A stretch of DNA of 63,931 nucleotides, the filler included, from Olpidium bornovanus S191 (Eukaryota > Fungi > Olpidiomycota): NCBI GenBank assembly GCA_017911155.1. It is 32 parts of 32 records of this genome, joined end to end, with 100 filler letters (N's around TTAATTAATTAA, not from the genome) between each part and the next. Parts side by side here need not be neighbours in the genome. Positions count along the whole stretch, not along the records: positions 15,764 to 16,826 come from JAEFCI010000694.1; 31 more parts are not named here. One strand, 5' to 3'. Shown in pieces: positions 15,664 to 16,931 of the stretch (positions within the stretch are counted from its first letter, which is position 1; the number at the start of each line of letters is the position of its first letter). The notes below the pieces were generated by a model. It saw nothing but the letters and a program-made list of their open reading frames with translations. It searched no databases and was not told the origin of the DNA. Both the position numbers and the translations under genes were made by a program.

Positions 15664-15791
15664 NNNNNNNNNNNNNNNNNNNNNNNNNNNNNNNNNNNNN
15701 NNNNNNNTTAATTAATTAANNNNNNNNNNNNNNNNNNNNNNNNNNNNNNNNNNNNNNNNNNNNCCCCGCCGAAAAATCCCCTCTCAAACAC

Positions 15792-16316
15792 GAACTACGT
15801 TACCTCTGATCCCGGGCAACCGGGTACGTAGGCGGCCGAAACTCCTCCAGTAGGAGCGTAGGCTCGAGGCCCTTAGCCCTCCACTTTTTCCCTCCTTACT
15901 TTAGCCCCTTACCTTAGCTCCTTACTTTAGCTCCCTTACTTTATAGCTCCTTCTTCCCTGTAGAAGAACTACGTTACCTCTGATCCCGGAAACCGGGTAC
16001 GTAGGCAGCCGAAACTCCTCCAATTGGGGAGCGTAGGTGCGAGGAGCCATGTGCTTTCCATCTTTTCCTTTTTCTCCTTCCTTTTCCCTCCGTAGAAGAA
16101 CTACGTTACCTCTGATCCCGGAAACCGGGTACGTAGGCAGCCGAAACTCCTCCAATTGGGGAGCGTAGGTGCGAGGAGCAATGCGCGCGTTTCAATTCTT
16201 TCCTTTTTCTCCTTCCTTTTCCCTCCTACCCCCGTTTGGAACTACGCTCCCTCTGATCCCGGCGCGGGTACGTAGGCAGCCGAAACTCCTCCAGTTGAGG
16301 AGCGTAGGTCCGAGGG
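15792..16316. repeat. Four-copy array of a conserved 77-79-nt structured unit with pyrimidine-rich spacers (candidate ncRNA)
   Basis: Cores at 15792-15869, 15966-16044, 16098-16176, 16239-16315. Consensus GAACTACGTTACCTCTGATCCCGG-loop-CCGGGTACGTAGGCAGCCGAAACTCCTCC-loop-GGAGCGTAGGTGCGAGG. Start-to-start spacing 174, 132, 141 nt. Confidence 0.95.
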
Positions 16317-16766
16317 AATCCCCGCCTTCTATTCCTTCTTCAAATAAATTGGGGTTTTATAACCTCACTTTAACTTCAAAATCCTATGTACAACGCAGAT
16401 GTTTTTTTATCATGCATCAATTAAACTGTCTTTCAAAACATCGTGCGCTCTTCGTGGCGGTGAGGATGAGAACGGTCGAGTTCGCCCGCGGCATGGCGGG
16501 GAATCAGCGGGGCGGGCGCGGGGGTTTGCGCGGCTGGTTTGCAGGAATGGCCGAGAATTTCAATTCGGCGCGCGCAGTGGCGGAGCATCGGAATAATAGG
16601 CGTGCGCGGAAGGCAGGACGGACGGGGGAGAAGGAAGGGAGAAGGGGGGTGGGGGGGCGAAGGGGTAGGCCTCTTCGCTCTTCCGAGGAGCTTCAGATAA
16701 TAGTGAACTTCCTCGGCAGATCCGCGGCATCGACGGGTCGACCGTGGGAAAGCGAGGGGGGGGACG

Positions 16767-16816
<50 letters not shown>

Positions 16817-16931
16817 CCCCCCCCCCNNNNNNNNNNNNNNNNNNNNNNNNNNNNNNNNNNNNNNNNNNNNTTAATTAATTAANNNNNNNNNNNNNNNNNN
16901 NNNNNNNNNNNNNNNNNNNNNNNNNNAGATC

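Follow-up and report, generated by a model that had tools for sequence, protein, structure and literature searches.

A multi-copy tandem module of Olpidium bornovanus that may be a plus-strand structured RNA

The 1063-nucleotide (nt) contig JAEFCI010000694.1 of the fungus Olpidium bornovanus carries, head to tail, four copies of a module of 77-79 nt (the core) that is previously undescribed and unclassified. The module has sharp boundaries, is conserved against spacers that are unrelated, occurs in high copy number, is present in libraries of RNA type (a guessed label) and matches no known family. A root-infecting fungus that transmits plant viruses, Olpidium is the nearest zoosporic relative of the terrestrial fungi, and to our knowledge almost nothing is known of its non-coding genome. 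We describe here the array, its possible folds and its relatives in public sequence data, and we weigh the readings that these allow. Tentatively, and with less than even confidence, we favour the view that the module is a multi-copy structured RNA of the plus strand.

The contig is complete and occupies positions 15764-16826 of the window, that is, of the whole 63,931-nt stretch of DNA that was analysed, and all positions given below are counted along it. It belongs to GCA_017911155.1, a metagenome-derived genome of O. bornovanus S191 from non-axenic zoospores washed from cucumber roots (PMC7865070), and the Olpidium origin of so short a contig is based on the binning by the authors of the assembly. 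The array is built as follows, the bit scores being those obtained with a covariance model made from the four cores.

15792-15869, plus strand: core copy 1 (78 nt), hairpin 1 with loop GCAA, hairpin 2 shortened to 5 base pairs (bp); 94.4 bits
15870-15965, plus strand: spacer 1, pyrimidine-rich, containing a 13-nt short tandem repeat, unrelated to spacers 2 and 3
15966-16044, plus strand: core copy 2 (79 nt), hairpin 1 with loop AAA, hairpin 2 with one U.G pair; 111.3 bits
16045-16097, plus strand: spacer 2, T/C-rich; core 2 and spacer 2 make up a 132-nt unit
16098-16176, plus strand: core copy 3, identical to core 2
16177-16238, plus strand: spacer 3, T/C-rich, its 37-nt central part 92% like spacer 2
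16239-16315, plus strand: core copy 4 (77 nt), reaching 16317 with the 2 nt of an extended long-range complementarity; 98.3 bits

The four cores are mutually 92-100% alike, with 66 of their first 78 positions invariant, and start 174, 132 and 141 nt apart. Cores 2 and 3 lie inside a 95-nt repeat of 98% identity. The covariance model recovers only these four cores in the contig, all on the plus strand at 94-111 bits, and finds no further degenerate copies there. The spacers are 77-82% pyrimidine on the plus strand, which bears out what an earlier note on this DNA had said of them. The same note had compared the T4-T5 runs that follow the cores with terminators of RNA polymerase III, and this comparison does not hold up: the runs stand 17-30 nt after cores 1-3 and only at 40 nt after core 4, and since such runs are expected anyway in a T/C-rich spacer, they are not evidence of a terminator. 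The short tandem repeat, at 15894-15943 (consensus CCTTACTTTAGCTC, 3.7 copies), is found in spacer 1 only.

Each core contains two GC-rich hairpins, with CGUAGG after each of them, the invariant single-stranded words CUGAU and CCGAAAC, and a 5′ CUACG that is able to close the fold. The hairpins are as the earlier note had read them in the four copies. Hairpin 1 is CCCGG-GCAA-CCGGG, CCCGG-AAA-CCGGG (twice) and CCCG-GCG-CGGG, and hairpin 2 is CTCCT-CCAGT-AGGAG, CTCCTC-CAATT-GGGGAG and CTCCTC-CAGTT-GAGGAG. In core 2, for example, 15985-15989 pairs with 15993-15997 in hairpin 1, and 16015-16020 with 16026-16031 in hairpin 2. Core 4 has the shortened hairpin 1 (CCCG-GCG-CGGG) and an altered 5′ linker that lets TCCCTC pair with GAGGGA, an extension which had also been read correctly, as had the ability of CTACG to pair with either CGTAG word.

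Conservation within the core is extremely uneven, some 64 of its columns being invariant. Six of the nine hairpin-loop columns are variable, against 8 of the 71 columns in the rest of the core (Fisher p=6e-4), and in three variable stem columns the pair is either kept by wobble or the stem is shortened from the loop side. Variation is free in the loops of the hairpins, in three short linkers and throughout the spacers, and about 35 nucleotides outside any hairpin are invariant. This contrast between the core on the one side and loops, linkers and spacers on the other is not that of a neutrally evolving minisatellite or satellite; together with the sharp edges, the high copy number and the mix of tandem and dispersed copies, it matches what small-RNA gene families and small mobile modules show. 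The loop concentration and the wobble-kept stems speak in favour of a structure, for which the evidence as a whole is mixed. We are dealing, as had been proposed, with a conserved family of elements and not with a plain homogeneous minisatellite, and further loop and linker variants are found outside the window.

For the comparison beyond the window, the Logan contigs of four public runs, here called X1-X4, were placed on the array. These contigs come without strand or molecule ends, and the RNA type of runs, as said, is a guess. Across the runs the hairpin-1 loops are GCAA, AAA, ACAA, GAAA and GCG, two of which are GNRA, and the 4-nt linker 3′ of CUACG is UUAC, CUCC, UCAA or AACC. One hairpin-2 variant has another stem and loop and retains the downstream ACGUAGG...CGAGGG. 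The spacers of arrays of different sub-families are not homologous, and where copies have unrelated flanks, the similarity stops precisely at 15792/15793 and at 16313, which shows that the module has sharp edges. Two dispersed copies have AT-rich 5′ flanks, with 13% GC in X2 and 23% GC in X1 over the 30 nt seen, and such copies might be insertions into mitochondrial DNA or into AT-rich intergenic DNA. A depth of 31, similar to that of the arrays, is reached by the AT-flanked copy in X2, a run of RNA type.

In X1, the copy-1-type unit has a depth of 342 and the copy-2-type unit one of 331, while the AT-flanked copy has 7.8, and the depth is 0 over core 4 and over everything from 16138 onward. 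The copy-2-type unit assembles as a 162-nt unitig (132+30) that forms a closed cycle, which is expected from a long perfect tandem array and equally from a 132-nt circle. The copy-1-type unit differs from copy 1 of the window at two positions; it stands in tandem in X1, with a slightly different version of the short tandem repeat of spacer 1. Four runs guessed to be RNA, from 2 studies, contain arrays at depth 4-24, array contigs of up to 578 nt having depth 6-24, and a 578-nt contig of one of the RNA-type runs (X2) holds three cores with periods of 122 and 153 nt. The same RNA-type runs have depth 0 over the adjoining flank 16340-16760. These data suggest that transcription runs through cores and spacers.

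The public runs that carry the array are one run of 2012, a few runs of RNA type that belong to a second organism and come from 2 studies, and four soil or unspecified metagenome runs, and the element assembles in soil metagenomes. This distribution fits a rare organism of roots and soil rather than the plant host. Organelle DNA of cucumber, the culture host, was considered as a source and rejected, as few runs carry the sequence and a deep RNA run with the organism label of the RNA-type array-bearing runs gives 0 reads.

We now consider the fold in relation to the strand. The pseudoknotted model of the earlier note pairs in 94.6% of cells, with three one-sided wobble changes. RNAalifold, for its part, favours a nested model: CUAC is paired to the second GUAG, hairpin 1 sits on a long interrupted arm, and the second arm is hairpin 2 itself; in this model the variable columns 9 and 43 remain paired through wobble. 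The consensus fold is weaker on the minus strand than on the plus strand (−20.8 versus −24.0 kcal/mol), and on the minus strand it breaks at variable columns and has a positive covariation term. Stem changes preserve the pairing on the plus strand only, namely the U.G in hairpin 2 of copies 2 and 3, a G.U in hairpin 1 of a variant in run X3 (CCCGG-ACAA-CUGGG), and the column pairs 9/44 and 10/43 of the nested model. The last of these reads U-A in cores 2-4 and U.G in core 1, and the copy-1-type unit of X1 has C-G there; this is possibly one compensatory path, and at the same time an anecdote noticed after the fact.

Before the RNA reading is taken up, it is necessary to deal with the gene that is annotated at the array. 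The NCBI gene model BJ554DRAFT_8070 (‘hypothetical protein, partial’, 115 amino acids) spans 15784-16179 on the minus strand and crosses cores 1-3, and if it were right, the array would be a protein-coding tandem repeat. That the core starts are spaced by multiples of three throughout (174, 132 and 141 nt), with core insertions and deletions (indels) that are not, is probably chance (1/27). One minus-strand frame is also open through core and spacer. However, the loop indels of +1 and −2 nt place the invariant stretch between the loops in frames that differ between copies 1 and 2, and because they shift the frame while the nucleotides between the loops stay identical, the conservation is at the nucleotide level. 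An open reading frame of 77 amino acids is bounded by stop codons, the gene model needs one predicted intron, which is placed inside the 13-nt short tandem repeat, and an array of X2 has a 122-nt period. No protein homologue is found in 5.8 billion clusters or 1.84 billion representatives, except the contig's own gene model, and word-index and HMMER protein searches with core-crossing open reading frames give this model and one unrelated low-complexity protein. BJ554DRAFT_8070 is thus almost certainly a false gene prediction in a repeat that is non-coding, and the coding reading can be regarded as effectively refuted.

We put the plus-strand RNA reading first because of the invariant nucleotides outside the hairpins, the wobble changes that favour one strand, and the arrays in RNA-type libraries. 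According to this reading, the module would be selected as a folded plus-strand RNA, so that RNA rather than DNA would be the selected form and the plus strand the functional one. The arrays would act like a small-RNA gene cluster or a non-coding RNA made of repeat units; transcription would pass through cores and spacers, and each core would fold independently. The invariant unpaired words may then be a surface that is read by a protein or a processing activity, and the units would be processed or bound.

It is important to point out that a number of observations weigh against this interpretation. In the window, no pair is changed on both sides and, as almost nothing varies, there is no excess over shuffles; with 3 distinct sequences the comparison has no statistical power. 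Compensatory covariation is thus absent, and the structural argument of the earlier note lacks statistical support so far. The single-sequence fold energies are no better than those of shuffles, with z from −0.66 to −1.16 on the plus strand (−0.06 to −1.21 on the minus strand). The same X1 copy that has C-G at columns 10/43 carries a change of C12 to A, which breaks a pair in both models. Because CGUAGG, CUCC and GGAG each occur more than once, several helices that exclude one another can form, and the fold is not fixed. As regards expression, the RNA label of the array-bearing runs is a guess and their contigs lack strand and molecule ends, and the element is high-copy in DNA, so that read-through transcription or carry-over of DNA could explain its presence in these runs. 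A deep raw-read RNA run of 2026, with the same organism label as the RNA-type array-bearing runs, gives 0 reads and is uninformative on ends and strand. Finally, no relatives were found outside this organism, the core patterns having 0 matches in JGI metagenome contigs, GTDB genome contigs and IMG/VR.

The conservation pattern can also be viewed from the side of the DNA. The module might be a selfish or mobile double-hairpin element (DHE), or a satellite with a palindromic module that is kept by spreading or by a DNA-binding or DNA-processing enzyme, and RNA would then have no role. We consider this somewhat unlikely, and yet it comes close behind the RNA reading. The DHEs of Allomyces measure 26-79 bp, and the two adjoining GC-rich hairpins of the present module, of 5 bp (hairpin 1) and 5-6 bp (hairpin 2), within 77-79 nt, fall in that size range. 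The dispersed copies combine AT-rich flanks (13-30% GC over 30 nt) with sharp boundaries, the depth is very high, the element is present in soil DNA metagenomes, and hypervariable loops are equally expected of DNA hairpins. The host is zoosporic, which is the group where such elements were first described (PMC10085805). DHEs have been recognised by a GC content above 75% in windows of 35 bp, in mitochondrial genomes that are AT-rich (PMC10085805). The cores have 58-64% GC, with 66-71% in the best 35-bp window, and AT-rich flanks are confined to the dispersed copies. The array itself lies in a part of the contig with 50-60% GC, beside DNA of 60-70% GC, the contig as a whole having 48-69% GC except for one AT-rich stretch of ~100 nt; its surroundings look nuclear-like, not mitochondrial. 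Moreover, the invariant unpaired words are not accounted for by hairpins alone, and the wobble changes are all on one strand, although enzymes that act on single-stranded DNA could have the same effect.

The depths in X1 bear on a further alternative, in which the cores are sub-repeats of an intergenic or external transcribed spacer of the ribosomal DNA (rDNA), acting as an RNA polymerase I enhancer, spacer promoter or terminator. Their copy number would then be high because that of the rDNA is, and transcription of the spacers would account for their presence in RNA. The array units exceed another X1 contig more than 40 times in depth (331-342 versus 7.8), the contig is short and unresolved, and the short tandem repeats, T-rich stretches and low-complexity GC-rich surroundings are in keeping with such a spacer. 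So is the fact that RNA-type libraries of infected hosts contain the element, since a fungal transcript has to be very abundant to assemble from them. On the other hand, core 4 and the flank from 16316 onward should share the copy number of the rDNA, and their depth in X1 is 0. Copies with unrelated AT-rich flanks and arrays with non-homologous spacers do not suit this explanation either, and the covariance models of Rfam find no ribosomal RNA (rRNA) or 5S match on the contig. We therefore regard an rDNA origin as improbable.

Read on the minus strand, the array could be made of retroposons resembling short interspersed nuclear elements (SINEs), with the reverse complement of the core as body and the purine- or A-rich reverse complement of the upstream spacer as tail, the arrays arising by insertion into tails and tandem duplication. 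Every core is indeed followed by a purine-rich stretch on the minus strand, the dispersed copy of X2 by a clearly A-rich 30-mer, and the size suits a short SINE body. There is, however, no similarity to transfer RNA (tRNA), 5S or 7SL RNA and there are no convincing A and B boxes on either strand, no target-site duplications are seen, and copies 2 and 3 are a perfect 132-nt duplication and not separate insertions. Invariant columns beside hypervariable loops are unlike a neutrally decaying retroposon, and the wobble pattern favours the plus strand. A SINE-like origin is accordingly very doubtful in our judgement.

We turn next to the known RNA families. The view that the module belongs to no catalogued family survives a search of Rfam on both strands, with the whole piece and with 97-nt single cores at E<=10: no family is matched, and the best scores are 10-16 bits, compared to gathering scores of 35-50. 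This negative covers the 5S, tRNA-like, small nuclear RNA, small nucleolar RNA and signal recognition particle families and all curated self-cleaving classes. ARAGORN finds 0 tRNA genes. A likeness of UCUGAUCCCGGAA and of the CUACG/GUAGG ends to 5S rRNA was considered and dropped, there being no covariance-model support for it. In comparison with spliced-leader RNAs, the donor-like GGUACGU pairs with the 5′ CUACG, and an Sm-like AAUUGG occurs in copies 2 and 3 only. No loose ends or spliced-leader-type junction at the internal GGUACGU are seen in the RNA-type contigs, and we found no literature report of trans-splicing of the spliced-leader kind in zoosporic fungi.

Two ribozyme classes had been brought up in the earlier note, and neither resemblance stands up to a closer comparison. 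The echo of the hammerhead lacks the CUGANGA...GAAA core: the pattern CTGANGA-N(6-30)-GAAA has 0 matches on either strand, CUGAU runs straight into the stem of hairpin 1, and the GA at core positions 8-9 is missing. There are 13 extra nucleotides between hairpin 1 and GAAA, nine nucleotides (CGUAGGNNC) between hairpin 2 and the GAGG strand, and the would-be 15.1/16.1 pair is A.C instead of A15.1-U16.1. With the core boxes, this pair and an Rfam hammerhead match all absent, identity with the hammerhead was rejected. The analogy to ribozymes of the hepatitis delta virus (HDV) type agrees in the strand order alone. Hairpin 1 has 4-5 bp and is not a 3-bp P3, and its loop of 3-4 nt varies in length and sequence, so that the would-be L3 is too short and too variable to form the 2-bp P1.1 with J1/4. 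Continuity from P2 to P3 and from P3 to P1 is broken by UGAU between CCUC and hairpin 1 and by UA between hairpin 1 and CGUAG, and the would-be P1, CUACG(U)/(A)CGUAG, has 5-6 bp and begins with C, whereas P1 of the HDV type has 6-7 bp and begins with G1 in a G.U pair. An HDV-like identity was rejected as well. The retrozyme architecture that had been suggested also finds no backing, as no retrozyme hallmarks are seen and the units are a simple head-to-tail succession of core and spacer with no hammerhead.

As a special case of the RNA reading, the tandem repeat could nevertheless hold a new class of small self-cleaving ribozyme, with array transcripts being cut into unit-length and possibly circular RNAs. 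Units of 132-189 nt with a compact conserved core resemble satellite-borne hammerheads, and invariant unpaired words flank three helices. In two variants the pseudoknot-capable CCUC/GAGG grows to 5-6 bp, GAAA and CGUA could form an internal loop resembling loop E, and the 132-nt unit of X1 forms a closed cycle at depth 331. Any perfect tandem repeat gives a closed k-mer cycle, however, and the RNA-type runs still contain contigs of as many as 3 units. No known class is matched by covariance model or pattern, the defining hammerhead and HDV features are absent, and the prior for a new class is low. For these reasons, self-cleavage is in our opinion an improbable addition to the RNA reading, and we give a slightly poorer chance to the wider proposal that the module is a small RNA of a new class, catalytic or autonomous in some other way, in which case the arrays would be transcribed and cut once per module to RNAs of 132-189 nt, possibly circular.

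Some features of the rest of the contig deserve mention. A purine-rich block at 16622-16643, ~300 nt downstream of the array and with no inverted core beside it, repeats the 3′ end of spacers 2 and 3 (TTCTCCTTCCTTTTCCCTCCGT) in inverted orientation, at ~87%. In the GC-rich flank, at 16683-16716, CCGAGGA...TCCTCGG forms an isolated inverted repeat of 7 bp around an AT-rich loop of 20 nt; it has the word CGAGGA in common with the 3′ end of cores 2 and 3. The contig ends, at 16756-16826, in a run of ~56 G followed by a terminal GC palindrome (GGGGGGGGGGGGGC/GCCGCCCCCCCCCC), which looks like an assembly-end artefact or a natural homopolymer that stopped the assembler.

The module exists in hundreds of copies and hardly changes while its spacers are exchanged. 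Whichever of the two leading interpretations applies, it would be either an undescribed, abundant structured RNA, possibly with processing or catalytic activity, or a double-hairpin selfish element in nuclear-like DNA. Each of these outcomes would be a modest but real addition, and a ribozyme, if true, would be a major one. Array transcripts cut in this way in an early-diverging fungus would be a fungal, non-hammerhead counterpart of the retrozymes and satellite ribozymes. In practical terms, the module is a high-copy marker for Olpidium in sequence data from roots and soil.

It is instructive to set the array beside the systems that it most resembles. With the hammerheads of satellites and retrozymes (newt satellite 2, Schistosoma Sm-alpha, and the plant and animal retrozymes) it has in common tandem units of ~130-400 nt, a small conserved structured core and a high copy number; those units are transcribed as multimers, as the units of the present array may be. 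Unlike retrozymes, the array has no evident long terminal repeat-like sequences, primer-binding site, polypurine-tract logic or target duplications. HDV-like ribozymes (HDV, CPEB3, R2 and other retrotransposon 5′ ribozymes) have a similar size of ~70-80 nt, and their word order a, b, hairpin, a′, hairpin, b′, which permits a nested double pseudoknot, is found here too; the present core differs from them in its 5-bp first hairpin and in the interrupting linkers of 4 and 2 nt. The DHEs of chytrid and Schizosaccharomyces mitochondria and the GC clusters of yeast mitochondria, compared here by description, are likewise short, GC-rich two-hairpin elements in many copies that are conserved between copies, and they share the AT-rich surroundings (for the dispersed copies) and the occurrence in zoosporic fungi. 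Unlike them, the present element is found mostly in head-to-tail arrays with pyrimidine-rich spacers on a GC-rich, nuclear-looking contig, has long invariant unpaired segments, and has a GC content below that by which DHEs are recognised. The last comparison is with tandem small-RNA genes such as those of 5S rRNA, spliced-leader RNA and the tRNA arrays of Entamoeba. The core differs from these in having no known-family match and no recognised promoter boxes. Like them, it is a sharp-edged, conserved, gene-sized unit of ~80 nt, separated by unrelated spacers with short tandem repeats and T-runs, and present at high copy number both in tandem and dispersed.

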